Positions 31,821 to 61,250 of a stretch of DNA of 64,000 nucleotides are shown here, piece after piece (position 1 is the first letter of the stretch; the number at the start of each line of letters is the position of its first letter). Made by a program: the position numbers and the translations under genes. The DNA is from Saccostrea cucullata (lineage: Eukaryota): assembly GCF_032062105.1 (NCBI RefSeq), contig NW_026929710.1:62001-126000 (forward strand), given 5' to 3'. The notes beneath the pieces are model-generated. The model saw nothing but the letters and a program-made list of their open reading frames with translations. It was not told the origin of the DNA and did no database searches.

Positions 31821-31858
<38 letters not shown>

Positions 31859-33604
31859 AAATATGCATCTACTAACGGTTAATTTATGTACCTTCATTCT
31901 GAGATGATACTGTAAATACAATTATAGGGATAGTATGCCCTTAAAACTTCTGTAGAAACATGAGTTATAAATCTTCATAAAAAATGCAGATTATAAATAT
32001 TGATTTTATTATGAATTTCCCACCTATAAAATATTTATATATATAATTTTTTATGACATTATATAAGCAGAAAATATCAAGTTTATCATGTACCAAATTC
32101 CACTTAGACACCAAGCAAAGCTGTTTCTGGAGAGAGTCCACCACAAGAAGTGCAAGAGGTGCAGACGACTGCAGAGGGAGGCATCAGTGAAAAAGCACCA
32201 GAATCTGCTTTCTGTGCGAAGAAAATGAAAAGGCGGCCTTCTCAATATGAGGCTGATGAGAGGTGATTTTATTTACTAGTATTTGAATAAAACCTTGATT
32301 GCATTTTTCTGAGTAGCATCCCGTCCATTTTCGATAGCAATGAAGCAACGGCACTTGTTTCTTCAATATTTTTAGCCCATAGTATATTATAATTTTTTTA
32401 TACAATGGGTTAATTTAAAAAATATTACAGGAACAAGCGCCTGTGCGATGGAAGTCAATAACAGTGTAATTGATGCAAATCACCTATGGGATCTTACGTT
32501 TTAAGTTTTCGTAGTTAAAAAAATAAATGTCTTCTCCAGAAAGTAATCTCATGTGCCCTGAAAAAAAAATATTATAGTTCTTTTCAAAACCTTCATTTAT
32601 TTACAAAGTAAGTAAAATGCACTAGGCACAAGTTCCAAAGTTGCAATTTTTTTTTTTTTTTTAACGATTAAAACTTCAGACTCCTGTGTACAAATATAGA
32701 TTCTCTGAAATTGAAACTGGCATTAACAGTCTAGAACAGGATATATACATATATATATATATACATGTACATGTACAATCGGAAGTTTAGAGTTTTATTG
32801 TTTAACCTGCACTTAAATGTACAAAAAGTTACAGTAAGTCGGGTTTTATGAAACCAAGACTATGACAGTTGAATTTCTAAAATTGTGATAAATACATAGC
32901 TTTTCTAATCTTCCTTCGTGGATCTGTCAGAAAACTCGGAAAATCGCGGCAATCTCGGATATATTTTTCGAGCTCTCCAGACTGAAGGGCCCGAATTGAT
33001 GCTTTTGGTAAAAAAAAAAAAAAATAGTAACACAATGGAAATCTTTTAAATAGGTACTCATTGGCTCTTCTGACCTTTGATTTTTCACCTCGAAATTGAA
33101 AGCAAGGCAAAATACAGAATGTTGTTTTGAGTTAAAGAGTTATCGATTGTCGATGTGAAGCACACTCTTATAGATTTACTATTCTAAATTGTAACCCCCC
33201 CCCCCCTCCATGCAACAATTTGTCTTTTTTTTAATTCTAATGCAGCAAATTAAAATTTGGTTCAGATATCTTCTTCTGTGTTTTATTATGCTATAGCGCT
33301 ACCTCACCCATCTTTTTAAAAGATAAGCTTGTCTTGAGATAATTATACGTTAGTACGAGTTTTTGAGCATACTGAATGATTGTTCTTCGGTAGCTTGATA
33401 CTACAGAGAGAACTAATCAAGATTCAGAGGGAATGGCTCGATGTGGAGAAAGAGAGACTCGGCATCGAGAGGGAGAGGCTTCAGATAGAGCGTCGACGCT
33501 TGGAGATGGATGAGCGGGCCAGGGGATTTTCCGCCACATGTAATAATTCAGAACGCAATGCATCGGAATTTCAACTCTTCAACGGTGCATTTATGCAAAT
33601 ATGA
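29558..33604 (+). CDS. Harbinger Myb/SANT-like protein (copy 2)
   Basis: Exons 29558-29947, 32108-32262 and 33394-33604, with the same translation as copy 1. Confidence 0.88.
30461..31857 (+). mobile_element. Second copy of the Helentron/satellite element
   Basis: Same structure at the same position in Harbinger copy 2. Confidence 0.85.
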
Positions 33605-34210
33605 GGAATGTTAATGTGCATTTGATAAATCTTTTAATTCATATATCCACTGTTTTCTTTGATTTGCATGTACGTACAAAACATAAAGTTCCATTCATTA
33701 TGAACAGCATATATGTAAGATGTAACTGGTAAATACAATGTATTTTTCCAGAAAAAAGAAATTAAACAAATGACAAATGAGTTCTAGACATCGTAGTTAT
33801 ATCTCTGTTTTCTTTTTGATCTACAAAGAAATGCAATAAAATTAAATAATACATACACTTGCTCCTATTTTAATCACTTTCTGCAACTTCTTTACATCTA
33901 TTATCTCCTTCATGTTTATTTCACAATAAAAATAAAACTTTGGTGACTAAAATTCACCATTTTTTCACAGAATAAGAAGAGATCTCTGTAAACTTTCACC
34001 TAATTTCTAAAAAAAAAAAGGTTCCGGTGTTTAATTAAGTTTGAAAAAGTGGGGGGTGCTCCTGAAATTTACATTCCGATATCTGTATATATGCCGAGCT
34101 TCTAAATATTGAAAACATTACCTATTACGCAAAGCTACCAATTCAAATACCCGGCCAGATCAAATGTCATCGCACAAATGAAATCAGTTTAATTTGTATT
34201 TTTTAAGTAC

Positions 34211-36990: not shown

Positions 36991-38556
36991 TTCGTAGTTT
37001 CTTGAATAACGGGTATGACGTAAAATATTACGTAACAATCGTTTTATACGTAACTTAAAAAACTGAGTACTCTTTATATGCAAAAAAAAAAAAAGATTAT
37101 AATAAATAAAAGTAGATCGGGAAGAAAGTTTAATCAATTGTATAATTTAATTATTATTTATGTGTTTCCATTTAAATGTTAAATTATTTATTCTTAAGTA
37201 TAATTAATTTATTTTTATTTCATAAATATGGGCTTTGCCCTTTCCGCAACGTTTACGGATGGTCATGACGTCCCGTAATGTACCGCCGATTTTACGGAAC
37301 GTTTACGCAAAGTTTGCGGGTGCGGTACTTACGGAGACGTCGTGAATAAGAATTTTTCCCCTGCGGGTCAATTCCGCAAAGTCTACGGGTCCGGTAAGTT
37401 TACGGAGGCTTTGTGAATAAGGTCCCTGATGTTCATCAAAAATTAACGTCAATTGTCGTAGATGGAAGACTGATATAGAGCTCCAAACCTTTGTTTTGTA
37501 AACAAGGTAAGTGTCATGTTTTTGTTTACATAGATTAATATACTACTTTGTGTTCGCTCAAAGCAGATAATTTCAATAAAGAAATTTAATTTAAAATTTA
37601 TTTAAAATACGATTCTACAGTTTCTAATTATTTGCTGAATTTCATTTGTTATAAATATTATATTAACAAATGATGTTCAATTTTTGCAGTTCATTTGGAT
37701 TTTATTTCATTTTAAATATGATATTAACAAATGATGTTCAACTTTTTGCAAATCAATAGATAGTGCCTTAGTTAGAAATTGTAAACCTTAACATTGGTTT
37801 TAAAAATCAGATGAAACTGTGTCTATTTTGCAGATACCACAATTTCTTAAATATATAACACTACAAATGAGGGACTTTTCTTAATGGTAGAAAATATTTC
37901 GTGACGAGACACATTTTTCTAAATGACTAATCCGATGTATTTTATTTTTGTTCTTTTTTAATTACCAAATTGAAAACAAAAAGATTATTTATCTTGATAA
38001 TTTCTTTTTTATTATTTGTTTATTTATGCTCTGGTGATTTGAGAAAAGGTTTTGCCTATTTAAAATGAATAAGTCCCCTTAGTATACGAAAATCAATTGT
38101 AAAAGTACAAATAGTTTGAAAACAAAATATCAACATTAAAAATCTTGAAATGCTCAGTATAATAATAATAATTCAAACTATTTCCTAAATGTGTTTTATG
38201 AAAATAGAAACTGCATGTGTGTCAGAAAAAGTATGCCAAAACATTGTTTTTAGTTTTCTGTTAAATTTAGATATGATTGATATGATTTTTTCTCTCGCTT
38301 GTTATTGCAGATATATTGAAGACAGATAAACATGTTAGAGTATGGGACATTGAATATTATATTTGTATATTTTGTTGACAGTAAGTTTGTCAACAACACA
38401 AAAAAATCAATCAAACAATGAAAAAGAGAAAAATGGAGAAAAAATAAATAAATAAGAAGAGGAGGGAAAATGAATTTTTTTTAATATTAAAAAATATTTT
38501 AACTTTAGAAATAATTTGATTTATTGAAAAAGATGAAGTAAGATATTAAAGGCTTT

Positions 38557-38871: not shown

Positions 38872-41462
38872 AGCTGGTCTATAGGTAGAGGGGGAGAACT
38901 CAAATTTATACACTGTAAAAATGGAACCCGAAGTTCAACTTCAAACTATCATTCCAATTAAACAAGAATTAGGGTCCCGAGAAGTATATATAAAATCTGA
39001 TGTCTTAATGTCCTATAGAAAAAAAAATGCCCCAATTTTTAAGACACAAATCTTAGCAGAAACAACATTTTGATTTTCTCCTCAATCAAAGCATTGACGC
39101 TGAAAAAAAAAATCGATAAAAAATCTCACGTATGATTAGAATTATCTCTCTTGGAAAGAAATGACCATTGCATTATACAAAGGTATTTACACAAAGCAAA
39201 AAAAAATTTATTAAATCAGTCTTCATAACTGCAAGAGCAAGTAATGTAATCGTCAACACAGGTGCAATTCTGGCTAATTCTGTTAATATAAATTCTTTAT
39301 TCAAAAACGAAAGTACTCCAGGAGATGCACCTTCTTTGTTGTTGCATAAAATCTAATTGGTAGCTTCTTTTGTCGCTAAAGTTAAAAATAGTAGTCTCGT
39401 TAAACCAGACGTTCAATCGGCTGACACCGTAAATCTCCGACAAGACGCTCTCGGCTGTCCCGGTGAATCTCTCTCTTACGGAGACAGCCAGGCGTCTGGT
39501 AAATCGAAACTATTTAAATAGTGTTGGGCTGCCATTTAAAAAAAGATTGAGCAGGTAAGTACTTCTTACTCTATATTTAATTCGTTTTTACAGTAATAGG
39601 ACTATGCCTTGTGTATTAAATTCATAATGATTTTCTTTTTATTAAGATTATGAATATAATCATTATTATGCTTATTATTGTTTCCATTATTTATTTTAAA
39701 AACCAAATTATAAGGATCAATTTGCAATCTGGAGCATTTAAAAAAAACAAATTTTAAGGACCTATAATTTTTTTTACTCATTGTGTGTATTTTAAATCTC
39801 GTCAAAATCAAAGTTTCATTTAGTTTAGATTTCATTTATATTAATGAAATCTAGATTTTAACAAAGTAGAAGATATGACTCGGTGATATAAATAACTAGG
39901 GTACATGCAATACTAAAAACAGCAAAGGGGAATTCCAAATTCAGAGTAGGGAATTCACAATGTTTTCGTGTCTACTTGATCTGAAAATTTCATATTGACT
40001 CTTTCATACCTAAACGCTGGTTTTTTCTCATTGTGTATTTTTTTCCGAAAACTATTTTACATTTTTCATTTTTTTTGGGGGGGGGGGGGTGGATTATCAG
40101 TATTATTGTCTCGATATAGAGCATAGAATGAATTAATAAAGTAATAAATAAACCAGAGAGAAGGTGCTGTTATTATATCAAAACTTTCATGTTGAAGAGG
40201 AAAGCACAATTTAAATTCCCCCAATCCCGTTGACAACTTAATTCAATGAGAATACTTAATTCTCATTATGTAGGAACAATGCATAAAACGAATTGACACA
40301 TTGAGTTTCATTCATGATAAGAATTCAGCTTAATATTTATTCATAATATTATCTCAAAATGAAGTCCACTGATGCAAATAATACCAGAAAAAGTTAATAT
40401 ATTTTGTCCTATTTTGTAAGATAGAAAAAATTCTTTTTTATTGCTTTCAAGAACATTAATCTAAATAGAAATAATTTTCAATTTAACCCTGATCATGTAT
40501 ATACAATGTATTATTAGGTATTTATATGGCTGGCACTTCTGGACCGGAAATGCCGGAGGACAAGGCAGATGAAGACGAGGCTGTGACCCAGTTTCTGATG
40601 AGTATTGGCCTTGACTGCCTCACAGAACTGTTCTCCAAACAAAAGATTACCATGGATATTTTAAAGGAGATGACTTCAGAGAATTTGAAGGAGGCTGGAG
40701 TACAGGAGTATGGTTACAGACACAAGATTATTAAAGAACTTAACAAAAGAAAAGGTATGTAAACATGCATTTAAGAAATAATTAATGGATCATTTCTAAG
40801 TTATTATCGGATATAGTAGTAAACACGGGTTAATCCATGTGATCAAATCTTATACAGCCAAAATGGCTTTAATTCAGATTCAATCAGTTAACAAATATTT
40901 GAGTAATATATTTTCAAACCCACGGCGATTTTTTTCGAATCTCAATGATAAGATGTGACTTTGTTAATCACGTTTACCACTAATGGTGTGAAAATATTTT
41001 GATCTATTATGACCTAATAATGAATTAATGGCCACATGAAAAATCCGTTTATTATACAAGTTTTACATTGTTTAATATATAAACGGAAACGTTTGTAAAT
41101 GTTAATATTTCAGAACAATGATCACATGAATGATAATAATAATGATAATGTTTTAGGGACTTCGGCGTCTGTTCAAAGGTCAATATATCAACGAAAAAGA
41201 AAGGCAATCTTTGAACAGCATAATATGATACCCAGCAAGAAACACTGCAAACTTGGTAATAGTTTTTTTATTGATCTAAGAATGGCCCAAGGCTTTAAAA
41301 TCTCGATCGTTTTTGTGCCTCTGTCTATTTATCTGCAAACAGATACATAGATTTATTTCATTAAAAGTCAGGCCAGTTTCTATGCATGATCCTGTTACAA
41401 AGTAATTTAATGTGAAAGGACACGAGTTTGATCAAATTTAAATTTAAGCAATTTCAGCTTAA

Positions 41463-42122
41463 GGTTATCCGATCCTCAGGTTCTGAAAATCAGGCATTGA
41501 GTAGTTGAAAATGCTCACAAGGATGTCTCTAAATGCTCAAATTAAAATGTACTCAAATTCTTTAAAATTCATCTTCAAATTTAATCATATTATATAGGGA
41601 AAATTGGTAAATCTCGAATAATTTTTCAGGCAATGCGATTTGAACTACCTACTGCATATTTTCTAATTGATAATTGATCAAGAAATACACTTAAGGAATA
41701 AAAATCATAGGCATCCGGGCTTTTAAAGAAAATTGCATGCATTTTCAATTATTTGGACTTTACTCTCTCCTACTTACTTCCATTGTTTCAGAATGCATAG
41801 AGTATGAAGTGTTTCCTTTCAAAGAAAACACTGCAAATCACATCTAATTTCACATAATGCATATAAACATTGGTAACTAAGGCTAAATTAAAAGAAATTT
41901 GATTTTTTTTAAATATGCAAGTTCTACTTCATTTTATGAGGTACAAATGTTAACCTTTTTAAATAACGTTTGTTAAAACTTTAAAGAGCATTGAATCATG
42001 CGTAGAGGCATAAAATGAAATTTGTTGCATGAAAAAAATTCAATTTCAAGCCTTATTTTAATACTTATTGCATTAAATTATAAATTAAAGAGTTATCCTT
42101 CCTGGCTGAGGATCGTATATCC
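41463..42122. mobile_element. Non-autonomous element with TTAA TSD (Kolobok-like), intronic
   Basis: TTAA|GGTTATCCGATCCTCAG ... CTGAGGATCGTATATCC|TTAA. Confidence 0.7.
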
Positions 42123-43687
42123 TTAACACATTTAGATTGTGAATGTAGAGATGGGTCACATATTTAAATGAGGTATTTCTGCAGATATTCTTTCAGAGTA
42201 ATTTAACTTTCAGATATGCTTATGCCCCTCACAATTTATTTTTTCCCCTTTATAATATGAATACTTTGGTAGGAAAGTATTTTCCATTTAAGCAGTTTTG
42301 TCAATGAATTTGTTGTTTGCCTTGAAATTATGCCCTTCAAACCTTTTTGAATATATGTATTTCGTCCGCTCAATAATTGCTGCTCAATGTTTGAAAAAAA
42401 TATACACATTCAGTCCAGCTTTCTTATATGTTGACTGTAAGCAAAATCATTTTTCACATACATGCATGCTCAGACTAGTATTTTTCTGTTAAGTTGATGA
42501 ACTTGATATATCAATAGATGATTAGAACATAAAAAGAGAGTTTTTTAAAATGATACTTGTATACATGTATATGACTTTATTAATTTATTTAGTATATTAA
42601 TTTATTAATTTGCCTATACAGGGAACACTTTTTATCAAAAAACTGCGCCGTACCCGAAGAGAAAATCCGTGAAACCAGGAACACAAATACCACAAATCCA
42701 TCAGACGGCAGCTTCGACACAGACATCCTTTCCTTCATCTCAAAATAATTTGTCAAGTACGAGGAATTCAAATAATCATGGGTTGATGCAAACCATGGCT
42801 ACTCAAAACATCCCACAAACAGTTTCTTCCAACAGTTTGAGTAATACTAATTCAATATTTCCTGCCACTAGTAATAGTCAAATTGCTACAAGAAGTACCA
42901 ACCAATCGATGCTGGTAAATATCCAACCAATATCAGCAGGTAATAGCCAAGGCACGAGTCAGTCAATTACATTACCCAACCAGTCCTCTGTCAGTCCATC
43001 AGCCACAACTTGTATCACTACCTCATCCTCCTCCTCAACATCGACTTGTTCAAGTTGTACAACAATGTCTTCATCTCCATGTGCTTCACACTTAACCCTT
43101 ACATGTAAGTAATAAAACAACTGTTCGGTTAATCATACAGTCAAAATTTCAGACCAATGTGAACCAAACACGCCACAAAACATGAAGATAAAGATCGACA
43201 GGAGGTGCTCACTTATCCAAAACACCTTTTCCTACCTTTGATTTTAGAGGTTTAGGTTCGTTCTGCTTACAGTTTGTATTGTTTGTATGATTGTCTTTCG
43301 TTATCTTCACATTTTTGGAACAGATGACAATGATGACGCCATTACAGAGGACGAAAATAGGTTCTTGAGGTTTTTATTGTTGGCACAACTGGGTACTGAA
43401 GCTATGAGGATGGCATTTGACAATACTGTTCCACCACCCCACCTGGCTTCTCATCTACAGACTCATATACGCAAACTAAAGGAGAGATGTACTTCACAGC
43501 AGATGAAGGTCCTTTTCCCAAGTAAGGAATATAAAATTCAATTGAAATTTCCCAAATTTATTAGATAAGAATGTCATAATTTGCTTTTTTAAAGGACAGA
43601 TTTAATGCAAAAACATGTATACTAATAATAAGCTTCTTTTTTCTGATCTGAGGACAGATTTTATGCAAATATACTCCGTAATAAGAT

Positions 43688-43982
43688 TGATTGATTGTAT
43701 ATTGTTTAACGTCCCTCTCGAGAATTTTTCACTCATATAGAGACGCCACCACTTGCCGGTGGAGGGCTACAAATTTTGTCCTATGCTCGGCACTCAGGGC
43801 CTTTGAGCAGTGAGGGATCTTTTTCGTGCCAACACCTACTGCGACACGGGGCCTCGGTTTATACGGTCTCATCCGAAGGACCGGTCTCCACGTCCCGCAG
43901 TGGGATTTGAACCCGCGACGTAAGGATTGACTCCTTACTTCGCGACTCTAGAGCAGACGCTCTAACCACTGCGCCACACGGG
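43688..43982 (-). mobile_element. Full-length tRNA-derived SINE
   Basis: On the minus strand: A box TGGCGCAGTGGTTAGAGCG, B box GGTTCAAATCC and a (CAAT)n tail. The 14-bp TSD CTCCGTAATAAGAT lies at 43674-43687 and 43983-43996. Confidence 0.92.
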
Positions 43983-44913
43983 CTCCGTAATAAGATATAA
44001 AGTTTAAAAAAATTTTATTTATAAATGTTTACTCAACAGAGCATTAATATTTCATTTCAGCCTATCTGGTATCGACGACAAACTTCGATACAACTTTGCT
44101 CTACACTCTTTTCCGTAATACAGTGAGTGTTAAGGCGCCCTCTAACGGTTGGGGAAAAGATCCTCGCCCTCACAGCACCTCTCTTACTGATGATATAGAG
44201 CGAGTAAGGATACACAGAAACTCCATCTGTCATGGGAAGACTTCAATGGATCAACTGACTTTCCAAAGGAAATGGTTTGATTTATCAGAGGTGAACGTTT
44301 AATTTATCTTCGACCTTATAAAGATAACCTTATGCAGTTTTCCTACAAGCCACGTGTTATATAAAATCCGTTGAATAAATCATTTTCTCAGTCAAGTAAA
44401 TGTCACAAAAATTCAATACCATTTAACAGAAACATAGACGTATCTACTGTTTTCATGTACATGTATTATAAATTTGATAAAATACTTCTACATTATCTGG
44501 TGATCACTTGAAAATTGATTATTTTCTTTGACAATTTTTAGGCAATTTCTCGTTTGAGTAATGGAAAATTGAAAAAAGAAACTTCTTCTTTGGAGACGAG
44601 AAATTTTGATAAGAAAGCTAGGAAGAGTATCATGGATGACTTTGATCTCCTACAAAATAGAGTCTCAGAGTTAGAGCAGACTCATATACCAGCGCACATA
44701 AAAGGTACGTTCTCTTTCGTAAAATAAAAATACAGTCACAAAATTATTCAAGGTGGGAAATTAAGAAACCAGACCACATGGGGATAAATAGTAAACACTT
44801 TGTTATGATCCTTTTAGATAATGTTATATTTAAAAAAAAAAAGGATGCATCTGGAACATAAGTTGGGATCGAGGATTTGGAATGAAAACAATATTTTGAA
44901 TATTTTCCTATTC

Positions 44914-44914
44914 T

Positions 44915-44945
<31 letters not shown>

Positions 44946-44998
44946 AGATTCTAATACATACTTATACAATACAAATATACATTTTCTGTAAATTTTTT

Positions 44999-45069
<71 letters not shown>

Positions 45070-48000
45070 AAGAGAGAGAGGAGGGCGAGAAGGGATAGTA
45101 AGAAAAAAATTACAAAAACAGATTCTTCCAGGGTTTCCAGGCTTCGTCAAAAGTCAACTGATTATTGTTTTTATATGCAATATACTTGTTTATTTCATAC
45201 ATATATTTGATGGAGGATATCAGTCCATTCAAGGAGAGGTATTTACCACTACATCTCATTCTGTAGATAAAATATTTAATCTGAAGAGCAATGAGATATT
45301 TTATTTTGTCTAATTTTGCAAAAGATCCCAATATGAATTCTTTTTTCAAATATACAACATTAATATGAATCTTTCTAAAGCAATAACTATCAAAACTATT
45401 CAATAAGTCTTGTACTACTTCACATTCCCAGAAGATGTGTTCAATAGTTTCTGTCTCAGTTTCACAAAAAGAACACTTGTATGAATCTATTTTCTTAATT
45501 TTATGTAAAAAGGAATTTGTTGCTAATATTTTATGATTAATGCGGAACTGAAACCACTGAAGTTTTGTATCTTTTGTGAGCTTAAAAGGAAATGAAAAAA
45601 CTTTTTCCCATTCACTATCATTCAAGTTAAAAATTCTATTCCAGCTAGTCTGACCTAAAGGCTTGATATCATTGCTTTTCAAAATTTCATATAAATTTCT
45701 TGATTTCTTCGCATTTAATAAACGGAATGTTTTTTGTGTAATATATGGCATATAAACAGTTGGCATAGAAATAATATTTTTGATTTTCATCCATTCTCTA
45801 ATAGCAGCTATAAGTCCATTGTACTCAAGAAAGTTTGTATGGATTCCATATTTCAATTTAAACATATTTACATCCATAAAGGAACCGTCCTCTCTTAAGA
45901 GATCATTTACGAAAAATATATTATTTTCAAACCATTTCTTATAAAAAATTGGGTTTTTTTTTACCATTCAGAATATTTTTATTAAAAAATAGTGGTTCCA
46001 TGGAGGCACTTGCTTCTAGTTCTGGTAATTTAAAAAAAAAATAGCCAGGCTTCTAAAACTTTTTTCCAAAACATATTTTTTACATCTTTAATTTTCTTGA
46101 GAATGTATTCTTCTCCACAAAAAACTGTTTTTTTTAAATCTAAAGTTAGATATGAATATTTACCTTGCAGTATGACATTTTTCATCCATACAAGTTTCAG
46201 AGACATAATAAACTCTTTAATACTAATCATCTTGAAACCGCCATCTTTAAGATCTTTAATACAAACTCCTTTTTTTAGTCTAAAATCTTTAATTTTCTTG
46301 AGAATGTATTCTTCTCCACAAAAAACTGTTTTTTTTAAATCTAAAGTTAGATATGAATATTTACCTTGCAGTATGACATTTTTCAATACAAGTTTCAGAG
46401 ACATAATAAACTCTTTAATACTAATCATCTTGAAACCGCCATCTTTAAGATCTTTAATACAAACTCCTTTTTTTAGTCTAAAAGCATTACTCCCCATTAC
46501 AAAAGAATAAAAGGTGTTTTCTAAATCTTTTATATATAAATCAGTGGGATTTGGAAGGGAGGCAAAAATATGATTCAATGTTGGCAATAAAAGTGTTTTC
46601 AAAACTGTTAATCGTCCTAGTGGTGTGAGATTCCTATGTTTCCAATGTCTTATCATTTTCTTTATGTTTTCTAACTTTGAACTGAGATTCCTCGAAAGTA
46701 TCTTCTGCAAATCTATATCAAATTCAATACCAAGTAACCTAAAGTTTTTCTTTCCCCACTCAAGAGATTGATTTTTACATAAAACCTCATCACTACCTTT
46801 TTTGCTACCTATCCATATTACTTGTGTTTTATCGTAATTTATATGTAAGCCGGACATTTTTGCAAAATCTCTAAGGGTACCTAAACTTGATTGTAAAGAT
46901 TTCTCACTGCCATCTAATATAAGAGAAGTGTCATCAGCGAGCATCGAGATTTTCTTTTCCCCATCAATAAAATATATACCTTTGATGTCTTTGTTGTTTC
47001 TTATCTTAATAGCAAGGATTTCAGCACATATCAAGAATAAGTATGGGGATAGTGGGTCTCCCTGTCGACACCCTCGATGCAAAGAGAATGTTTCAGATAA
47101 ATTTCCTCCCTGATTTACTGCTGATGTAATGTTTGAATAAAATAAACTGACCCATTTCCTCATAGACTTTCCAAAATTAAAGAATTTAAGTGATTTTTGA
47201 ATAAAAGCCCAAGAGACAGAATCAAATGCTTTTTCAAAGTCAACAAGAAGAAGAAGACCTGGTATTTTTTCTTCTTCTGTGTATTGCATAATGTCATAGA
47301 TTAGTCTAATGTTTTCAGCTATATGCCTGCCCTGTATAAAGCCTGTTTGATCAGGATGTATAATTTTATCTAGAAACCTTCTAATTCTATTTGCTATTGA
47401 ACCAGATGCAATTTTATAAACTGTGTTTAAAAGAGAGATAGGTCTCCAATTTTTTAACAAGTGTTTAGGTTTGTCACCCTTCGGTAAGCAGGTAATGATT
47501 CCATGTCTCTGAGTTACACTTAAGATATCATGATCATATGCATAATTAATTGATCGGACAACAAAAATGCCTATAAATTTCCAAAAGACCTTAAAAAATT
47601 CTGAGGTAAAGCCATCTGAGCCAGGTGATTTATTTGATTTCATCCTAAAAAGTGTTTCCCCTGCCTCCTTCATTGTAATTTGACCTTCTAATGACCTTGA
47701 CTCTTCATTGGAAAGCTTTTCAATATCTGAAAAATTCATTTCCTCCTGAAGGTTAACATTTTCAATGACATCATCTACATTTCTATATAAATTTTCATAA
47801 TATTGTTTGGTTGTTTTTAAGATATCTGACTGATTATAAACTGTCTCTCCATTTTCTAATTTAATTTTTGGAATAATTTTACTTATGAAATTTCTTGACT
47901 CGAGATTACAGAAATATTTTGTCGGTTTCTCCCCTTCTTCTATCCATCTTGCCCTTGACCTTATATATACACCAGCCATTTTTTCTTTTCTAATATCTTC

Positions 48001-49592
48001 CAACTCTTTCTTTTTTTCTTCAAGAGTTTCATTATTGCTTGTAGACCCCTGTGCCAATTCCTCCAGGGAACTTATTTCTTTTATAAGTTTTTCTTCTTTA
48101 AAAATTCTGGATTTTTTTTTAAAAGACGAATATGAAATACATTTCCCTCTAATTTCCATAAGAAGTGTTTCTAAAAATAACTGGTCATTGACTAAAAATA
48201 CAATATTTTCATCTTCAATAGATTGCAAGTTATCTATATTGTATACTGGAACTGCATACTGCTCTTTAACCCTTTGTATCACCCCCTTAATTGAGTTTAA
48301 AAATTCTTCATCATATAAAAGAGAATTATTAAATTTCCATAATCCTTTGCCTTTCTTAAAATCATTGAACTTTAAACATAAAGTAATAATCGAGTGGTCG
48401 GACCTATAGCTAGGTTCTATAGAACTTGTTGTAACACTTGACAGTAAGTTCTCCGATACAAGAAAAAAATCTAATCTACTTTGCTTAATGGGACTTTTTT
48501 TTCTCCAAGTATATCTCAAAGCATCTGGATTATTTTGTCTATAAATATCAACTAAGTTGTTATCTTCCATAAGCTCTATAACCCTCTGTCTTGCATTAGG
48601 GTTATTTATATGTTTATAATTATAGTAGTCTAATTCAGGATTTAAAACAAGGTTAAAGTCACCACATAATATAACATTTTCACAATTAAAATCATTAATG
48701 TACTCATGTAATCTTTCATAAAAATCAGGGTTATCATTGTTTGGTCCATATATACAACATAAGAGAAACCTTTTTTCATCAGCAGTAAAATCTAAAAGAA
48801 GAAAATTACCATCCACGTCTCCTTTTTCCTTAGACATTTTAACCTCAAAATTATTATTGAATAGAATTGCTATACCTCTTGCATTTGATGAAAAAGAACT
48901 AAAGTAACAGTCAAAACCCCACATGCTTCTGATTTCATTTTCTATTTCAGTTGTAAAATGAGTGTCCTGAAGGCAGTAAATATTATAATTCATTCCTCTA
49001 AGATAATTAAAAACATCTCTTCGTTTGCTGATATCCCCCAATCCTTGACAATTAGCTGATAATATTTTCAAAGACATGATGGATAATTAAGAAATTTACC
49101 TCTGACGGAACCTGGAGCTTCTGTACGAATCTTGAATAAACACAGAATTGAGTTGTAAAGAGAAAGATAGAGTAGAAAGGAAAGAAGTAACAGAACAGGA
49201 AAAAGTTTGTAAAAAGCATTCAAACAGTTCAAAAATTGGCTAGCTCGAAAATTGTCAATGGGCCATATTCGCGTACAGGCAAAAAAGTCACAACCGGAAT
49301 TTAATATTTTAAAGTAATAGCAAAAACTTCGACGTCAATGGACCTCAAAGTTCCGGAATAATCACATGGATGGAAATTAAAATTCCGGGTTGTCTAAATA
49401 ACACTTTACACTATTTGATTTTTTCATCAAGATTGTCCAACAAGTCAAACTTCATTCGTTTATCGTTCACCAGTCCATAAACACTTCCATTAAAGTACCA
49501 CGCATTGTCTATTTTTGGGTGGTCTTTTAATCGGTTTATGAGGATCCCATTCAGTCTCGTCACATCGTCTGTCAGCCAGATCTTCCCATCTG
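44914..49592 (-). mobile_element. 5'-truncated L1/Tx1-clade LINE, antisense in an intron of the NLR-like gene
   Basis: Poly(A) tail at 44914-44939 and a 13-bp TSD TATTTTCCTATTC (44901-44913, 49593-49605). An ORF1 C-terminal remnant lies at 49411-49590, followed by ORF2 from 49077. The 3' UTR contains (TC)n. Confidence 0.95.
45110..49077 (-). pseudogene. LINE ORF2 (APE endonuclease - RT - C-terminal zinc knuckle), frameshifted near 45960-46040
   Basis: Endonuclease motifs NCQGL, LQDTH, GDFN, RLDFF and SDH. RT motifs WRPISLLN, DFEKAFDSV, QGDPLSP and LADD. CSFC..ETIEHIFWEC lies in the downstream frame. Confidence 0.92.
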
Positions 49593-52050
49593 TATTTTCC
49601 TATTCAGTTGAATGGAATGCCTACTTATATTTCAAAACATCTACGTATTACACCTTTAATGGGCTAATATGTTTTTGATCAACAAATATTAATTGATTCG
49701 AAAATACATATTTATACTAAAAGATGGATTCTTTCATTCGTTAATATATATTGTTTGTCCAGAATACTTATATTCCCCAAAGTTTTCACTTCTATAAAAA
49801 ATAAAAAAAGAGGGAGCTGGGTTGAAATTATTTTTTTTTCAATTTTATGTCGACGAGTGACAACTCCATGTTCAAACATTTATCAATATACAATATCTTA
49901 AACTTTGTGTTTGCAGAAAAGAAGAAGTCACATCAGTTTGATTTCAAATTAAAAATATCTATGTGAAGAAGAATCAAAATTTTACCACGATATTTATATA
50001 TTCAACGTGAAAGTATCCATTTTAATATTTAATTTTTTCACAGTGAATTATCAAATATACACGAAAAAGAATGAATATATAGCAACCACAAGTCAAATTT
50101 TAAATTTAGTATATACCACTTGTGTTATATATCAAATCAAAGCTTATAAAAAATTGTTTAAGAAAAATATAATTTTGAAATTTTCTGGTCAAGCATTGTT
50201 ACTAAAAATAGATTGCGAAATGTAAAGGTATTGTTCTAGTGTGTGACCACTTTTCTGAAGAAAATACCTAGTAGCATTGAGGTCAAAACTTAAGGTAATG
50301 TATTCAAAATATAATCTCTCTCTTCTTATTTCCTTTGCCCAGAATCCGAGTTATTAAAGTTCAATTGCATCAAACACCTAGATTGACTTGAATCATTAGA
50401 TAGTGAGAGTCGTCTTCCAGTATAATTAATTGGGTTACATGGGACACGCAACGTTACGTTGACGTTATGCTTATAAAAAGACGTCAACAAATCCAATCAA
50501 TAAAAATGATCACAAATTAATTTAAAACAAGATTTGTTTGTAAAACACTATACACCCGGCAACGACAAAATAAAAAAAAACTTTTTGGCACATATGTCAC
50601 AGTCAAGGTCACAAGGCAATTGACCTTGGTGTCATTTGAGAGAACATGATTAGTAAAATATGGATACCAAAAATGAAGTATCTGTTTCTTGCGCTTCAAA
50701 AGTTATTGCAAAGGTTAACTAAAAACGAAAAAAACTATTTTTAACATACAGGTCACAGTCAAGGTCACTGGGTTTTTGTCTTTAATTACTAGACTGTATT
50801 TATCCTTTTGTAAAATTAATCTTTGTGTTGGGCACAATGCTTGCAATTACAAAATTCCGTGGCGGATCAAAGGGGGTCGTATCCGCCCCCTAAAATTGTC
50901 AAAGTTAGCGTAAATCATAGTTTCGTCGAGAAAATATAAAAATGTCTACTCGGTTAACCTCAATTTTTCCTACAAAATCTCTAGAATTCAGCTTAAACCA
51001 GATTACCCCTGCCGATTATGGGCGCCCCCTCTAACTTTAATTCCTGGATCCGCGCATGGGATTTATAGAGAGTTGGAGTGATAAATACTTATCATATAAG
51101 GAATCTAAAAATCATGAATTTTTTATATAAATTATCAAAAACAAAAAATTTGTATTTTAAATTCTTCATACGAATACATTTAATATGATGCGGAGAATTG
51201 GTAATGAACTGGTATTAACTGGGAGCGTGATGTAAATCTTAAATTATTCCGATATGTAAGTGGAGACTAATAATCTGAATAACTAAAAAAAACTAGAAGA
51301 ATATAAGTCATAGATATGACCGCAGCATATGATAAATTCTGAAGAAAAGGAGGGGGAATTTAATTTAAAATTCCTTTGAACATTTAGTTAAACATGTAGA
51401 TCATTCCTAATGTGTGTTAAAGGTTGTCCGAATTTTTTGTGAATTATTAAAGCTCTCTCTCTCTCTCTCTCTGATGTAAAACATTTGATTTGCCCCGCTT
51501 TTGAGAAAGCGATCGAGGTTTCTTCAAATCTTATTCGTCTGTCTGTTTGTCAGTCAGACTGTAAATCTGTTTGTATGTAACAAAAATTCAACCTTGGTCA
51601 TCTCTTTAGAATTGGAACAGAGAAGAGATAGAATTGTATATTATTCATGTGTTTAAACTGTGACAAGACCTTTCTAAATACACTACAAGAAACCTATATA
51701 TTGTCGCAAGCGTCAAAAATCGGCCGCAAACCCAATTAATTGTTCCTTTGATATAGTAATAAGAAACTGAAATTTGCATGATCTGTTTTTAAAATTCCTT
51801 ACATTTATCTATTAAAATATCCTCCTGACATAAAACACGTGCATGCGACATTGCCGATTTTCCTTGAACCTTGACGTTTGACATACTTTTCAAAAATGCA
51901 ATTTTCCCCTTATAACTTCTGATTGAGATTTATATAATGCTTTCATATTTAACATGTTCATTGATGTGATTTCTGACCCCCTTGATCTGGACCTGTATGT
52001 TTGACCTAATTTTCAAAAAATCAACTTAAGTTATAACATTTGGATGACAT

Positions 52051-52497
52051 ATTATAGGGCGTTCATATTTGGAACAATATGCCATAAATAATGTAATATT
52101 ACCCACATAGAGACAAACAGCCGGTAAAACAAATTAAAGATTTTGTCTATACACGTACATGTATAGTACATCGGTACATGCAGCACTTTCATCCCCATGT
52201 ATGTTCATTAAATTAGATGTCAATGTCTAAGACATTTGATATACACTTTAAATTTTTTTTCATCACGTAAATATTATAGGGCGTTCATATTTGGAACAAT
52301 ATGCCATAAATAATGTAATATTACCCACATAGAGACAAACAGCCGGTAAAACAAATTAAAGATTTTGTCTTTACACGTACATGTTTTATAGTACATCGGT
52401 ACATGCAGCACTTTCATCCCCATGTATGTTCATTAAATTAGATGTCAATGTCTAAGACATTTGATATACACTTTAAATTATTTTTCATCACGTAAAT
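52051..52497. repeat. Tandem duplication of about 222 bp
   Basis: ATTATAGGGCGTTCATATTTGG...CATCACGTAAAT occurs at 52051 and 52273, nearly identical. Confidence 0.9.
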
Positions 52498-55400
52498 GAA
52501 ATTTTTCATGAGTGAATTCTTCAATACTGTTTTAATAACCAAAAAGTACAATCTGAAAAGAGTCAGAAATGAAAATTTTAAAATATCAGAAATGAAAACT
52601 AAAACATGTCGGCCATGAAAAGTTGAAATATCGAAAAATTTCCAATCGGCAATCCTCGGCTGACTCCGCTAGGTTCCATTCAAACCTCCGAGGTGCGATA
52701 TATGAGCCGCCCGAGATGCTCCAAGTGAAAAATACCAGAAATGAAATGCAGCTGGGGGACCACAATTTTAATTTCTTTTTTTAAATTTTAGACCTCTTTG
52801 ATGCATCAGTAATATTATTTTGCCTATTTGATTATTACAATTCATCCATCTACCTATCCATATGTTCATATTCTACATAGGCATCGAAACCGGGGGGTGG
52901 GGGTGGTAAGGGGGGGGGTATAGGGGTCTCAACTTCCCCCCCCTTTTTTTCAAAGATAGATATTTTTTAGGCATTGAAAATTGTGGTTTACCTTTTTTGT
53001 TGGTTTAGCCGCCCCCCCCCCCCCCCACCTTCAATCAGCCACCCCACTTTCAATTTGCGACGTTTATGCCCTAACATGCATGTAATTTATTGTTAGTGTT
53101 GTAATCAAAAATACTTAGAAATTTTAGAAATAGTATTTACCAGTCAAATATAATCTAAGTAAAATAATAAAATCTACACAACGTATTAGATTAAATGCAT
53201 ATGATCTATATCCATGGAAAACGAATCTAGAATATTTGTAGGCCTTATTGTCTCTTGAAAAAAATGAGCACCTGGCAAATACTATTTTTACATTTGTGTT
53301 GTATATAAAAATAATAAAAAACATATATATTAAGTTTCAATAAAATGCCAATGTAAGGATATAAACTGTATATCAATGGGAAAAAAAATCATATGAGACA
53401 AGCTGAATGAACATTATAAAAGAAGATATCCCACGTACCAAAAGTACAAAATTTTCTGTGACATGAATTTTGTAAACACGTTCTTCTGGAATTTAGCATA
53501 TCATACAATAAACTTATTTATTCATGAACTCAATTGAATTTATTTACATTTCTTTTAATAAAAAAAATCAGAAGGCTATTGTATTTTTTTCTTTACACTA
53601 GATACTTATTTTCTTACATATTTATTTTTATTTCTTACTCATGATTTTAATTTTTTATTGCTTCAAAATTATAACGTCAATTTTACTTTATAGAAGTTTT
53701 CTTTTTCAGTCCTAATCATCGTTCCTTGTTTTATATTTTTGACATGTTTAATTAGTATTTTTCTTAGATAAAAAATTATTATATTTAAAATTACCCCTTC
53801 GGGTACCCCATTAAAAAGACATCGAGAGTTATCCCCCTCTGAATATTTCTATAGTTACAGTAAACAAACTACATTACAAAACAATTTCCAGGAATCGTGG
53901 AGGGCGTGAAAATGACGTCAAATATCATTCGCGCTGGCTATATGTTGTGTTGTTATTTGAAAGATCGCTTCTTAGCGCCGATGCAAGGAAAATAAATCTA
54001 CACAGTTTCTTAAAGAGGAGAATATTCTCTTTCGATCTATTATTGTAACACATATGCAACCGGTTCGTCAAACGAGTGAAAAAACTCTCCGAAAAATGCT
54101 TACATTTGACTTTCCATAATCATAGCAATATACATATCTGGCTAGTCGTGTTTGGTATCATTATATTCAGAATAATCAACTGTATCTACCATTGTACAAA
54201 GAAATCCGAATATATCCTCTGTTGTCCTATAAACAGCGAAATAAAAGAATGCGGTTTTTATGACGCGCTAAAATCGTGACGTTTTATTTCAGAACATGCT
54301 TGAACATTTTATAGGAATTAAAACAAAAAACAGCGATAAAAAATTATAAAATTATAATTTTTAGATTGTTTAACAATTTATCTTTACAGTTCAATTAATT
54401 TTTTTGAAGTTAGAGACACGAAAGTATGTTAAATACGCTTTTTAAAACTGGTAGTTTTGTATACTGTCACATAGCGCAACGTAAAATGACTTGTGGTTGC
54501 TAGAATATATTTAAACATATTAAACCTTCTGAAAATGTGTAAATATTTCTTTTTCGTAACTTTTATTTAGAACGTCAAACTGAGGAGATAAAAGTGTGGG
54601 AGGAAGATGATGAAGTGTTCTGTGAGACTCGTGCCTTTAATGAGTTTGAAGAGATGATGAATATTCATAATATAGTCACCATTATAGGAGGACCAGGTAC
54701 AGGAAAAACAGCAAAGGCACGCCATCTAGCGATCAAATACAAAAGCGAGGGATGGGAGATCATCCCGGTCATTTGTTTAGAGGATATCAAAAACTTTGGA
54801 CATTTCAGTGTTAAACAGCTTTTTTTGTATGATGATCCAGCTGGTGTGTTTGGGTTTGATAGGTCAAGATACAATTCCTTAGTAGATTTTACAAAAATCA
54901 TTAAGTCCTTATCAGAAAAATAAGCAAAATTCATTTTCACTTGCAGAAAAGCAGTGTTTAATGAAGGTAGAAAATTAGACCTGTATATTTTTCAAAATAC
55001 GATTGATATCGAGAGCAAAGGAATGTCCCTTACAACAAATGATATGAAGAAAATGCTCACAATTCATTGTGAGAAAAGCAGAGTTGAAAAGTCTGTTTAT
55101 CAATGCTTGTCATTTAAATCAGGATTTTTGATGTTTCCTTTGCTTTGCAAACTGTTTTCGAAAGAAGTCCAATATCAAAAAGATGGAGGACGATTTTTTG
55201 AAATGCCTAAGCAGTGTTTGGTTGCAGAGTTTGAGAAAATGAAGCTTCTAAATAAGACTCACTACGCTTCGTTAGCTCTTTGTGTGTTATCTCAGAACAA
55301 GCTTAACATACATGATTGGAAAGATACTGAAACATTAAATCTTATGGTCAAACAATTTAGGATAGAGGGATCCTTGTCTGAATTGCAAGTATGCGATGCT

Positions 55401-57399
55401 TTAAACGAAATGAATGGGACATATGTCATCAAAATTGATGAAATGTACTCTTTTGTTCATGACGCCATATTTGAAGTAATGGCATATATGTACGGGAGAG
55501 AATTTCCCGAAATGGTCATATCTAAGATGAATAGTGGATATATTTCTAGATGTGTGAGGCTGAAACCCGATGCACAATCAAATCTTAATTCATTTGTTAT
55601 CATTCCAGAACAAAAATACCCTGTTCTTGCTAAAAGACTTTATGATGACATCAAGGATAAGCAATTTTATGATGTCTTCCAAAATAAATGTTTGAAAGAG
55701 CAATCTTTTTTACATGTCTTCATCAAATATCTGAATACAAAGTCAAACGACGATTTATATGAAAATTTTCTAAATAATATTGATTATGTCCCTCATCTCA
55801 TCGCCACAGAATTTATTGATAAAATTGAGGAAGGACGAAAATACATTTTTGAAAGACTAATTGTCGGTGAAACATATGCACAGGTGATGACGGATTCCTT
55901 TATGGCTGAAGATGAAGAAATGCCTGAAAATATAACAACATTTAAAACGAAATATCAGATCCGGGCCCTTAACTGGGTAGTTGCTTACGGTCACGATGTT
56001 CTTTTTGAATTTCTTATGGATAGGATCTCTCTTAATGAGATAGCTAGGAAGGAAATGTCTTTGTTTTCCTCATATGAACAATCTCATCTTCTTGTTTTGA
56101 GTACTTTTAGTGCAGATTCACAAATTACAAAAAAACTAATTGGATACTTAGATTCCAACTGTATTGACCAAAGTCCTAGTGGTAAATTTGACCCTTTAAA
56201 TATCCACATGTGTTATACACCTCTTACCGCCGCATGCGTAGGAGACAATTCTGAAACAATAGATGTCTTGCTTGATGCTGGGGCAGATATCAATAAACGT
56301 GATGACATGCCTGAGGGAGATACGCCGCTTACTTATGTTGCTAAACATGGAAATATAAAGATTGTTGAACATTTGATCATGAGGAATGCTAATATCGACA
56401 AGGTTAATGGTTGCAATAAATCACCCTTATATTGCGCGTCTTATTTTGGTCATGTCAGCACAGTTCGATACCTGGTTGCAAACAAGGCTAACGTTAATAT
56501 ATGTGATGCTTACAATCAGTCTCCCTTATTTGTTGCTGCCGAAAAGGGTTTCATCGAAATAGTAGACATCCTAGTGCAAAATGGAGCAGATGTTACTATT
56601 TGCGAAAATAATGAAAATAAAACAGCATTATATCAGTCTATCAGTAAAAATCACTTAGACATTTCAATGTTGCTTCTAAAATCGAGTGTTTATGACACAT
56701 TACTGAATTCAAATACCATTGATTTGATATTAAGAGAAGGAGTAGATCTCAACGTTCTTGACAATGAGGGTAGAACAATGCTACAATGGGCTATAAAGAA
56801 AAAAGATATTGTAATTTGTAAGAACTTAATTGAACATGGAGCCAAAGTGGAAAGTCTCTTGGAAAATGAAATACATTCCCTTTGGTCACACGTCTTAATG
56901 TCTCACAATTTTGATGACTTGAAGTTTGTCGTGAAAAAGTTTGGTCAGCCCATGCGCTCTGATATTCCTTGGAAAGAATTTCATTTATCGAAAGCTTCAG
57001 CTGAAAATAATTTTGAAGTAGTTAGCGTTCTGCTAAACCTTAATTTCAGTTCTCCTTACGAAGGTCAGATATTGCAGGAACTCTTTACAATTGCAATACA
57101 CAGAGGAAACATAGAATTTGTGAAAAAAGCTTTGGCAAGCCAGGTAGAAATTGTTAACAAATGCGAACCATCACTTTCCTTATTTGGTCCAAAGAATACA
57201 ACACCATTGAATATAGCCATACAACATGGACACACTGATATTGTTAAATATTTGGTGGAAAATGGATCATATGTAAATATGCCCGATCAAACAAACAAAC
57301 CATCATTTTACAGAACATTTGAGTGTAGAGAAAATGAAACTGTTGAAAAAATGGCGCAAAATAAAGTCAACATTAGTTTTCCTAAGGGATTTGAGGACG

Positions 57400-60300
57400 A
57401 AATGCCTTTACATTTTGCAATAAAAAACGGACACACAGAAATTGTCAAATATTTAGTTGAAAGAGGATCAGAGACAAACGCTCTTGATTTCAGAAGAAAC
57501 ACTCCACTTTTTTACGCATTAGAAAACGATAAAATCGAAATTGTTGAATTTCTTGTTGGACATGGGGCTGAAGTAAATGTTCCTGATTTTTTGAATGAGA
57601 CGCCGTTATGTAAGGCATCAGAAAATGGACAAACTAAAATTGTTGAATTTCTTGTCGGACATGGGGCAGGGGTTAATTTTTTTAATTTTTGGAAAGAGAC
57701 CCCCTTAAGTAAGGCATCAGAAAACGGGCACACTGAAATTGTTGAATTTCTTGTCGGAAACGGGGGAGAGGTAAATGCTTCTGATTTTAGGAAAGAGACG
57801 CCCATATGTAAGGCATCAAAAAACGGGCACACCAACATTTTTAGATATCTAGTCGAACATGGAGCAAATGTGAATATTGATATTTCTGAAGGGAGATCCC
57901 TTTTATCTATGGCATCTAAAAACGGGCACACCGAAATTGTTGAATATCTAGTCGGAAATGGAGCAGAGATAAATGTTTTTGACTCTAGAAAAGAGACGCC
58001 CTTATACAAGGCATCAGAAAACGGGCACACCAAAATTGTTGAATTTCTTGTCGGACATGGGGCTGAGGTTAATGTTTCTGATATTTGGAAAATTACGCCC
58101 TTAATTAAAGCATCAGAAAACGGGCACACTGAAATTGTTGAATATCTTGTTGGACATGGGGCAGAGGTTAATGTTTCTGATTTTTGGAAAAGGTCGCCTT
58201 TATTTACGGCATTGGAAAACGGGCACATCAAAATTGTTGAACATCTAGTCGAACATGGGGCAAGGTTAATGGTTCTGATAATTCTGGACAAGGACGCCCT
58301 TATGCATGGCATCAGAAAACGGACACATCAATATTGTTGAATATTTAGTCGAACATGGGGCAGAAGTTAATGTTTCTTCCTCTGGGGAAGGGACACCCTT
58401 ATACAAGGCATCCAAAAACGGGCACAGTGAAATTGTTGAATTTCTTGTCGGACATGGGGCTGCGGTTAATGTTTCTGATTCTTGTAATGAGACGCCCTTA
58501 TGCAAGGCATCAGAAAACGGGCACACCAAAATTGTTGAGTATCTAGTAGAACATGGGGCACAGGTTAATATTTCTGGTTTTGGGAAAGGGATGTCCTTAT
58601 GCATGGCATCAGAAAACGGTCACAACAAAATTGTTGAATATCTAGTCGAACATGGGGCAGAGGTTAATGTTTATTATTCTTTGAAAGGGGCACCCTTATA
58701 CAATGCATCAAAAATAGACACACCAAAATTGTTGAATTTCTTGTCGGACATGGGGCTGAGGTTAATGTTTCTGATTCTTGGAATGAGACGCCCTTATGCA
58801 AGGCATCAGAAAACGGGCACATTAAAATTGTTGAATATCTCGTCGGACATGGGGCTGAGGTTAATGTTGGAAATGGACGCCCTTATTCATGGCATCAGAA
58901 AACGGTCACACTAAAATTGTTGAATATCTTTTCGAACATGGGGCAGAGGTTAATAGTTCTGGTTCTAGGGAAGGGATGCCCTTATTCATGGCATCAAAAA
59001 ACGGACACACCAAAATTGTTGAGTATCTAGTCGAACATGGGGCAGAGGTTAATGGTTCTGATTCTAGGGAAGGGACGCCCTTATGCATGGCATCAAAAAA
59101 CGGACACACCAAAATTGTTGAATATCTTGTCGAACATGGGGCAGAGGTTAATGTTTCTGATTCTGAGGACGGGACGCCCTTATGCATGGCATCAGAAGAT
59201 GGACACACCGAAATTGTTGAATGTCTAGTTGAACATGGGGCAGAGGTTAATGTTTCTGATTCTTGGAATGAGACGCCCTTATACAAGGCATCCAAAAACG
59301 GTCACAACATCTTAGAAATTGTTGAATGGTTCTTCTCGGACATCATGGCATCAGAAAAGGTTAATAATTGTTGATATCTTTGAAATGGGGCAGAGGTTAA
59401 TGGTTCCTTATACAATGGCATCAAAAAACGGTCACAACAAAATTGTTGAATATCTTGTCGAACATGGGGCAGAGGTTAATGTTTATGATTATTTGAAAAG
59501 AACGCCCTTATTCATGGCATCAAAAAACAGTCACAAGAAAATTGTTGAATATCTTGTCGAACATGGGGCAGAGGTTAATGTTTATGATTATTTGGAAAGT
59601 ACGCCCTTATTAATGGCATCAAAAAACAGTCACAACAAAATTGTTGAATATCTTGTCGAACATGGGGCAGAGGTTAATGGTTCTGGTTCTTGGGAAGGGA
59701 TGCCCTTATGCATGGCATCAGAAAACGGACACACCAAAATTGTTGAGTATCTAGTCGAACATGGGGCAGAGGTTAATGGTTCTGGTTCTTTGAAAAGAAC
59801 GCCCTTATGCAAGGCATCAGAAAACGGTCACAACAAAATTGTTGAATATCTTGTCGAACATGGGGCAGAGGTTAATGGTTCTGGTTCTAGGGAAAGGATA
59901 CCCTTATGCATGGCATCAGAAAACGGACACATCAAAATTGTTGAGTATCTAGTAGAACATGGGGCAGAGGTTAATGGTTCTGATTCTTTGAAAAGAACGC
60001 CCTTATGCATGGCATCAAAAAACGGTCACAACAAAATTGTTGAATATCTAGTCGAACATGGGGCAGAGGTCAATGTTTCTGATTCTTGGAAATGGACGCC
60101 CTTATGCATGGCATCAGAAAACGGTCACGCCAAAATTGTTGAGTATCTAGTAGAACATGGGGCAGAGGTTAATGTTTCTGATTCTGAGGATGGGACGCCC
60201 TTATGCATGGCATCAAAAAACGGTCACATCAAAATTGTTGAGTATCTAGTAGAACATGGGGCAGAGGTTAATGGTTCTGATTCTTTGAAAAGAACGCCCT

Positions 60301-61250
60301 TATGCATGGCATCAGAAAACGGTCATTACATAATTGTTGAGTATCTAGTCGAACATAGGTTAATGGTTTTTCTTTGAAAAAACACCTTTTGCAACAAAAA
60401 ACGGTCAAACAAAACATTTCATGGGGCAGAGGTTAATGTTTCTGATTCTTGGAAATGGACGCCCTTATGCATGGCATCAGAAAACGGTCACGCCAAAATT
60501 GTTGTGTATCTAGTAGAACATGGGGCAGAGGTTAATGTTTCTGATTCTGAGGATGGGACGCCCTTATGCATGGCATCAGAAAACGGTCACGCCAAAATTG
60601 TGAAATATCTAGTCGAACATGGGGCAGAGGTTAATTGTTCTGGTTCTTTGAAAAGAACGCCCTTATTCATGGCATCAGAAAACGGTCACAACAAAATTGT
60701 TGAATATCTTATCGAACATGGGGCAAAGGTTAATGTTTGTGATTCTGATTAAGAGACGCCCTTATTTAAGGCATCAGAAAACGGACACACTGAAATTGTT
60801 GAATATCTAGTAGAGCATGAGACGGATTTGAAAAATTCTAAAGATTTGAAAAGAACCCCCTTATTTAAGGCATCAGAACAAGATCACAACGAAGTTGTTA
60901 GATATCTAGTTGGACATGGGGCAGACGTGAATATTTCTGATAATTAGGAAATGACGCCCTTAAGTAATGCATCAGAAATTGGACATCTCAAAATTGTTGA
61001 ATATCTGTCAAACACGGGGCAGAGGTAAATGTTTTTGATTCTTTGAAGAAGATGCCTTTATATAAGGCATAAGAAAACGGACGACCCAAATTTCTGAATA
61101 TCTAGTCGACCATGGGGCAGACGTGAATATTTCTGATTTATTGAGAAAGAAACCTTTAAGTAATGCATCCAAAAATGGGCACACCGAAAATGTTGAATAT
61201 CTTGTCGAACACGGGGCAGACGTTTATGTTTTTGATTTTTTGAAAACAGA
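57400..61250 (+). repeat. Tandem array of 99-bp ankyrin-coding units (roughly 35-40)
   Basis: Consensus TPLxxASENGHxKIVEYLVEHGAEVN, with high nucleotide identity between units. Confidence 0.95.

Follow-up and report, generated by a model that had tools for sequence, protein, structure and literature searches.

Proteins in which a DZIP3-type HEPN domain is fused to ankyrin repeats and a NACHT domain were noted, together with their expansion in oysters, already in 2013 (Anantharaman et al., PMC3710099). In a later survey, the nSTAND3 domain is defined from bivalve proteins and the combination of HEPN, nSTAND3 and ankyrin is listed for Crassostrea virginica behind transmembrane and TRADD-N modules (Kaur et al. 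2021, PMC8195603). For the pearl oyster, more than 50 genes with an N-terminal DZIP3-like HEPN domain, the Rx4H motif, a STAND nucleoside triphosphatase (NTPase) and C-terminal repeats have been proposed to encode RNA-degrading immune receptors (PMC9646362). Human SAMD9 and SAMD9L combine a SAM domain, a disordered segment, an RNase, a STAND module and helical repeats, and are autoinhibited until activated by intermolecular assembly (PMC10246899, PMC13600222, PMC12680541). In this study, we analysed a stretch of 64,000 nt from the oyster Saccostrea cucullata (the window; contig NW_026929710.1, positions 62,001 to 126,000, numbered here from the first letter of the window), which carries a receptor-like gene composed of a SAM domain, a HEPN domain, an nSTAND3-type NTPase and ankyrin repeats. 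As assembled, the window encodes no single four-domain protein, while a paralog and orthologs encode one, and the locus is best explained as a recently damaged copy from a small oyster subfamily of cytosolic STAND receptors with the order SAM, HEPN, nSTAND3 and ankyrin.

The S. cucullata gene has the same three-part chassis as the bivalve HEPN_DZIP3, nSTAND3 and ankyrin proteins and differs from them by an N-terminal tankyrase-type SAM domain and a linker rich in serine and threonine; 'SAM+HEPN' is not among the entries in the accessible part of the survey's supplement, which lists TRADD-N proteins only (PMC8195603). With the pearl oyster genes it shares the HEPN domain with its Rx4H motif, the STAND NTPase and C-terminal repeats; there, however, the NTPase is NACHT and not nSTAND3, the repeats are LRR, TPR or WD40 and not ankyrin, and no SAM domain is mentioned (PMC9646362). 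Since the HEPN-nSTAND3-ankyrin core and HEPN-NACHT receptors have already been described in oysters, computational work has already established the chassis; new are only the tankyrase-type SAM addition and the parallel to SAMD9. No experimental characterisation of the bivalve HEPN_DZIP3, nSTAND3 and ankyrin proteins was found in the literature, nor any paper on the SAM-bearing form, the literature searched being one that excludes most subscription journals.

The preliminary description of this locus, made from sequence alone, had not recognised the four-domain combination as a characterised system. The core is already listed for oysters, however, and SAMD9/9L is a characterised system of the same order and logic, with an N-terminal SAM domain and a central STAND module in both. 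The predicted oyster RNase is, however, HEPN and not AlbA_2, the repeats are ankyrin and not TPR, and neither a SIR2-like nor an OB domain is present (SAMD9 domain list in PMC13600222). The likeness is convergent and not orthologous; SAMD9 was not among the PDB matches of the receptor SAM domain, and membership in SAMD9/9L was rejected because Pfam returned no AlbA_2, SIR2-like, TPR or OB match. Tankyrase shares the SAM subtype, a number of interface residues and a phase-1 end of the SAM exon (PMC4980433, PMC9712121), but places the domain between ankyrin clusters and PARP, whereas in the oyster receptor it lies N-terminal to the predicted RNase. RNase L uses ankyrins as the sensor that governs dimerisation of its HEPN-type RNase (PMC10942766), but with a pseudokinase instead of STAND, the reverse domain order and a KEN rather than a DZIP3 HEPN domain. 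Avs5 carries nSTAND3 as well (PMC12931631); it is bacterial, has a SIR2 NADase effector and a TPR-type sensor, and is 14% identical.

Within the window, the gene lies on the plus strand. Coding exon 1 (40526–40754) holds the SAM domain (amino acids 17–74) and ends in a phase-1 donor, exon 2 (41157–41255) encodes a short basic segment rich in K and R, and exon 3 (42622–43104) a low-complexity linker rich in S, T, Q and N without a Pfam match. The HEPN domain begins with its N-terminal helices in exon 4 (43324–43521), continues with the HEPN_DZIP3 core and the Rx4H motif RNSICH (44216–44233) in exon 5 (44061–44290), and closes in exon 6 (44542–44704) with a final helix and a helical connector toward the NTPase. 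The first part of exon 7 (54571–54920) encodes the nSTAND3 nucleotide-binding domain (NBD), with Walker A (GGPGTGKT, 54687–54710) and Walker B (LFLYDD, 54819–54836). After an in-frame TAA inside the NTPase (54921–54923), the same frame continues from 54924 to 56300 with the TCR motif (FTCR, 54936) and the remaining STAND parts (helical, winged-helix, then helical again), followed by the ankyrin region (56300–61250), in which about 35 units were matched, mostly at 99-bp spacing. All splice ends are AG/GT, the phases across the seven exons are compatible (1,1,1,1,0,1) and exons 1–6 are free of stops. In Pfam scans of the window, run exon by exon, SAM_2 (E = 2e-13), HEPN_DZIP3 (4e-17), nSTAND3 (2e-19) and Ank_2 (2e-139) all matched; for whole-protein comparisons, public full-length proteins were used. 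The in-phase joining of seven exons, the four motifs and the four domain assignments given in the preliminary description were thus all recovered.

Whether these exons form one gene was approached through a copy on contig C15667, taken as a paralog, which has the same exon lengths, 93–97% exon identity and 1355 codons of uninterrupted frame up to where the contig stops. RNA reads were mapped to this compact paralog and not to the window. All six GT..AG junctions, including those of exon 2, were present in reads or contigs, and none of them in a DNA-type run; the junction between exons 6 and 7 (44704 to 54571 in window numbering) was covered by 4+1 reads from two runs and by one contig of depth 66. 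At 26 of the 35 variant sites listed, the reads share the letter of the window and not that of the paralog, and they therefore represent a close relative of the window gene. The expected junctions were consequently all seen, but on the paralog rather than on the window itself. An assignment of SAM/HEPN and NTPase to two separate genes was rejected, given the exon 6–exon 7 junction in RNA and the single proteins in three species. A single spliced four-domain gene, as first described, thus stands for the family by RNA junctions and by single proteins, but not for the window copy with its TAA and frameshifted tail: NBD, helical and winged-helix parts lie in one polypeptide in the paralog and ortholog, not in the window.

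Intact relatives, which the preliminary description had suggested looking for in bivalves, exist in S. echinata and O. edulis and, as a partial copy, in S. cucullata. The products of S. echinata LOC133192274 and LOC133197762, Ostrea edulis LOC125659290 and LOC130046501 and, as a partial sequence, S. cucullata LOC134238555 are each annotated as one protein uniting SAM, HEPN_DZIP3, nSTAND3 and ankyrin, and the frame is open through the NTPase in XP_062576657.1 (partial, running off its contig), XP_061184254.1, XP_061189952.1 and the two O. edulis loci. In S. cucullata, a SAM exon precedes HEPN exons on nine contigs, some of which are haplotigs, while the SAM-less chassis is far commoner, with 891 HEPN candidates and 455 STAND-region candidates. 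The SAM-bearing members fall into three well-supported subclades within one larger clade of the NTPase tree. A homolog search with the SAM domain alone returned only the query, which is not evidence of absence from Crassostrea/Magallana. Between window and paralog, the ratio of nonsynonymous to synonymous substitution (dN/dS) is 0.08–0.12 in the exons for SAM, HEPN and NBD, 0.49 in that for the linker, and 0.27–0.34 after the stop, which places the family under purifying selection and makes the stop a recent one. Among the closest HEPN relatives (P0026, P0046, P0052 and P0040), shuffling has brought in CARD, COR-A and AIG1 GTPase domains, and one of these four apparently has an Ig-like N-terminus, as read by eye.

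For the NTPase, the window piece reaches 70 bits with nSTAND3 (PF20720) against a cut-off of 27.2, and an intact ortholog reaches 91 bits over profile positions 1–153 of 155. Walker A fits the GxxGxGK[TS] rule and Walker B is acidic; the second SAM-bearing subclade has SGPGMGKT. Foldseek, run with the NTPase module modelled from the intact ortholog (predicted local distance difference test, pLDDT, 84), ranked Avs5 first (helical EfAvs5 assembly 9jap), followed by NOD2/NLRPs and SAMD9. SAMD9 structures match this STAND model with an E-value of 2e-5 and a Z of 10.5. PADLOC on the NBD gave PDC-S73 alone, and every ESM Atlas match was below 0.9. Pfam matched nSTAND3 and neither NACHT nor NB-ARC in the window exons or the intact ortholog, and found ankyrin repeats only and no C-terminal LRR, so that membership among the canonical animal NLRs was rejected. 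HEPN_DZIP3 (PF18738) scored 62.7 bits against a cut-off of 27. The Rx4-6H motif with N after R is retained by every SAM-bearing member, and R-N-x3-H is nearly invariant among 93 relatives. In HEPN proteins the active site is shared by two domains, and dimerisation is needed (PMC10942766).

The SAM domain had initially been taken for a second N-terminal effector beside HEPN; judging from its sequence, an assembly module of the tankyrase type is the better reading. In the PDB it is matched best by tankyrase-1 and -2 (E = 2e-13, the next SAM at 2e-5), and its best match within the genome outside the family is the SAM domain of the oyster's own tankyrase, at 48% identity. Filaments of tankyrase SAM domains are broken by mutation at eight positions, and the linked enzyme is more active when these domains polymerise (PMC4980433). 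In the subclade of the window gene, seven of these eight key polymer residues are identical between receptor and oyster tankyrase, against a background of 41% (P ~0.01), as are 11 of 17 contact residues of the EH and ML surfaces. The equivalents of Y920, H924, D902, E906, K913 and K928 are kept, V903 is Ile as in oyster tankyrase, and position 897 (E897) is Gln; the six differing contact positions (897, 898, 911, 915, 919 and 922) lie on both faces. In receptor and tankyrase alike, a phase-1 intron follows helix 5, the last helix, within a few codons and ends the SAM exon, which fits exon capture without proving it. No PARP catalytic domain was found by Pfam after the SAM domain in the window gene or in the intact ortholog. 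Further tankyrase-like SAM exons, 32–39% identical to the receptor SAM, were seen on contigs C16717, C10650, C13113 and C13496.

STAND proteins are autoinhibited and assemble upon ligand binding. We propose, with a probability of roughly 0.55, that in intact members an ankyrin-gated STAND switch and SAM clustering pair the HEPN domains into an RNase. By analogy with other STAND proteins, the closed state would hold a nucleotide-bound STAND module with folded-back ankyrins, and opening would follow from a ligand on the fast-evolving ankyrin repeats. Clustering could then proceed by STAND contacts together with head-to-tail contacts of the tankyrase type between SAM domains, as the conserved interface residues suggest. 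Going by the biology of other HEPN enzymes, clustered HEPN domains would pair into the two-domain Rx4H active site and cut RNA, which may shut down the infected cell or the invader.

Possible, though clearly tentative, is a more far-reaching version, in which oysters captured the polymerising SAM exon of tankyrase in front of a HEPN-nSTAND3-ankyrin receptor and thereby arrived independently at a SAMD9-like anti-pathogen RNase, the STAND switch licensing a SAM filament that aligns HEPN dimers. This activation mode was not found for animal STAND receptors in the literature searched. If the subfamily works as proposed for its intact members, animals evolved the SAM-RNase-STAND-repeat layout known from human SAMD9/9L twice, using different parts, and oysters would own a direct RNA-cleaving cell defence of relevance to aquaculture disease. 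Bivalves carry hundreds of HEPN-STAND-repeat genes, for which no experimental test was found in the literature; the small SAM-bearing subfamily, which has been kept in two oyster genera, lends itself well to testing, since clear mutants can be borrowed from tankyrase (polymer interface) and from HEPN enzymes (R/H).

It appears rather doubtful that the SAM domain forms no homopolymer and instead acts as an adaptor, docking on oyster tankyrase or a sister receptor and in this way recruiting PARP, setting location or turnover, or forming sensor-helper pairs. Tankyrase SAM domains bind homotypically as well as heterotypically (PMC4980433), the receptor SAM retains much of both surfaces, and the three coexisting SAM-bearing subclades differ in their surfaces, all of which would suit an adaptor; the changes at 6 of 17 contact positions are, however, found on both faces, so that a re-wired self interface would fit better than retained tankyrase binding. 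Unlikely, in our view, is a system without RNA-cleaving immune function, in which HEPN does no more than bind RNA or act as a scaffold, or the receptor serves in stress or development. While no RNase assay of a DZIP3-type HEPN domain was found in the literature and non-immune STANDs exist (bioRxiv 10.64898/2026.01.04.697583), the near-invariance of R, N and H, the very large lineage-specific expansion seen in the 891 HEPN candidates of S. cucullata and the shuffling of the closest HEPN relatives with CARD, AIG1 and COR domains argue otherwise.

Several points nevertheless weigh against the proposed pairing of HEPN domains by STAND and SAM assembly. The second SAM-bearing subclade has only 1–4 of the 8 key interface residues identical, the changes being mostly conservative, and a single gain of the SAM domain is neither supported nor excluded by the NTPase tree. 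Hundreds of relatives lack SAM, which is therefore dispensable for the chassis. The HEPN model (pLDDT 94) found no match with Foldseek, and its top VIA matches, the HEPN proteins Csm6 (Z 6.7, root-mean-square deviation 3.5, 111 aligned) and AbiF (Z 6.0), are modest with Z below 8. RNA depth is low, and the reads derive from other individuals, probably of a related species (90–95% alike), with the paralog as target. Activation by a ligand, oligomer formation, RNA cleavage and a role in immunity are predictions for this family.

The copy in the window departs from its relatives at the TAA that separates Walker B from the FTCR motif, where the paralog has a Gln codon and the S. echinata ortholog likewise a sense codon. 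RefSeq places two genes here, XP_062620374.1, a protein of 584 amino acids ending at the TAA, and a separate ankyrin gene, XP_062620362.1. Past the TAA, the frame is open for 1138 codons; the ankyrin region is open to 58337 and then interrupted by at least four frameshifts, near 58270, 58680, 58870 and 59300, and by stops at 60375 and 60750. Purifying selection past the TAA, together with these 1138 open codons, again indicates that the stop is recent. The window copy would yield at most a SAM-HEPN-half-NBD product of 584 amino acids and is probably non-functional, leaving it a poor study object compared with its intact relatives.

Assembly errors in an otherwise intact window gene are a quite improbable cause of all these breaks. 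Two paralog haplotigs, 99.9% identical, differ only by four deletions of 1–2 nt, one of them exonic, so that the tail frameshifts, which lie in a 99-bp repeat array difficult to polish, may partly be artefacts. The exonic case is a 1-nt deletion in the HEPN exon 4 of the haplotig on contig C5678, 99.9% identical to the intact paralog, and could be a null allele or stem from faulty polishing. Both transposons inserted in intron 6 moreover contain local duplications of about 200 bp. The TAA, however, arises by one substitution, not by an indel, and lies in unique sequence, so that it is less likely to be an artefact than the tail frameshifts; the two insertions in the intron agree with a relaxed copy without proving one. 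Assembly errors would in any case touch the window copy only and are compatible with the mechanism proposed for the family. Very improbable, finally, is a functional truncated protein, acting as a sensor-less SAM-HEPN helper or as a dominant-negative partner of full-length paralogs, since, although no damage is seen in its conserved SAM and HEPN exons, RefSeq annotates the 584-residue form and junction-dependent decay may not apply to a TAA in the probable last exon, the NBD is cut mid-fold, the open sequence past the TAA is still under purifying selection and the TAA allele is not among the read variants listed for reads on the paralog.

Intron 6 is 9.9 kb long in the window and 732 nt in the C15667 paralog, owing to two insertions. 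The first is a long interspersed element (LINE) on the minus strand (44914–49592) with APE endonuclease, reverse transcriptase, zf-RVT and a poly(A) tail, flanked by a 13-bp target-site duplication (44901–44913 / 49593–49605). It is missing from the paralogs, and since other genomic copies are 98–100% identical over 4.5 kb, the LINE family is very young and probably still active; the window copy has its ORF2 split by its local duplication, which is private to it and lacking in other genomic LINE copies. A role of the LINE in the receptor system was rejected, as it is recent and missing from the paralogs. The second insertion (50080–54502, no strand assigned) spans 4.4 kb with 16-bp terminal inverted repeats, a 7-bp flanking direct repeat (50073–50079 / 54503–54509), no long open reading frame (ORF) and many genomic copies at 92–95%, and is probably a non-autonomous DNA transposon.

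Elsewhere in the window, 20297–28862 and 28860–37425 form an exact 8.6-kb tandem duplication (99.5%), the unit of which holds a Harbinger-type transposon (DDE_Tnp_4 on the minus strand, Myb/SANT on the plus strand) and a 166-bp repeat array; it is either a recent duplication or an assembly artefact. At about 1600–5200 on the minus strand, exons resemble the second-largest subunit of RNA polymerase II (RPB2), as seen by translation only. The segment at 12398–12784 is a low-complexity repeat inside a short ORF-like stretch, rich in Gly/Asp or in His depending on the frame.

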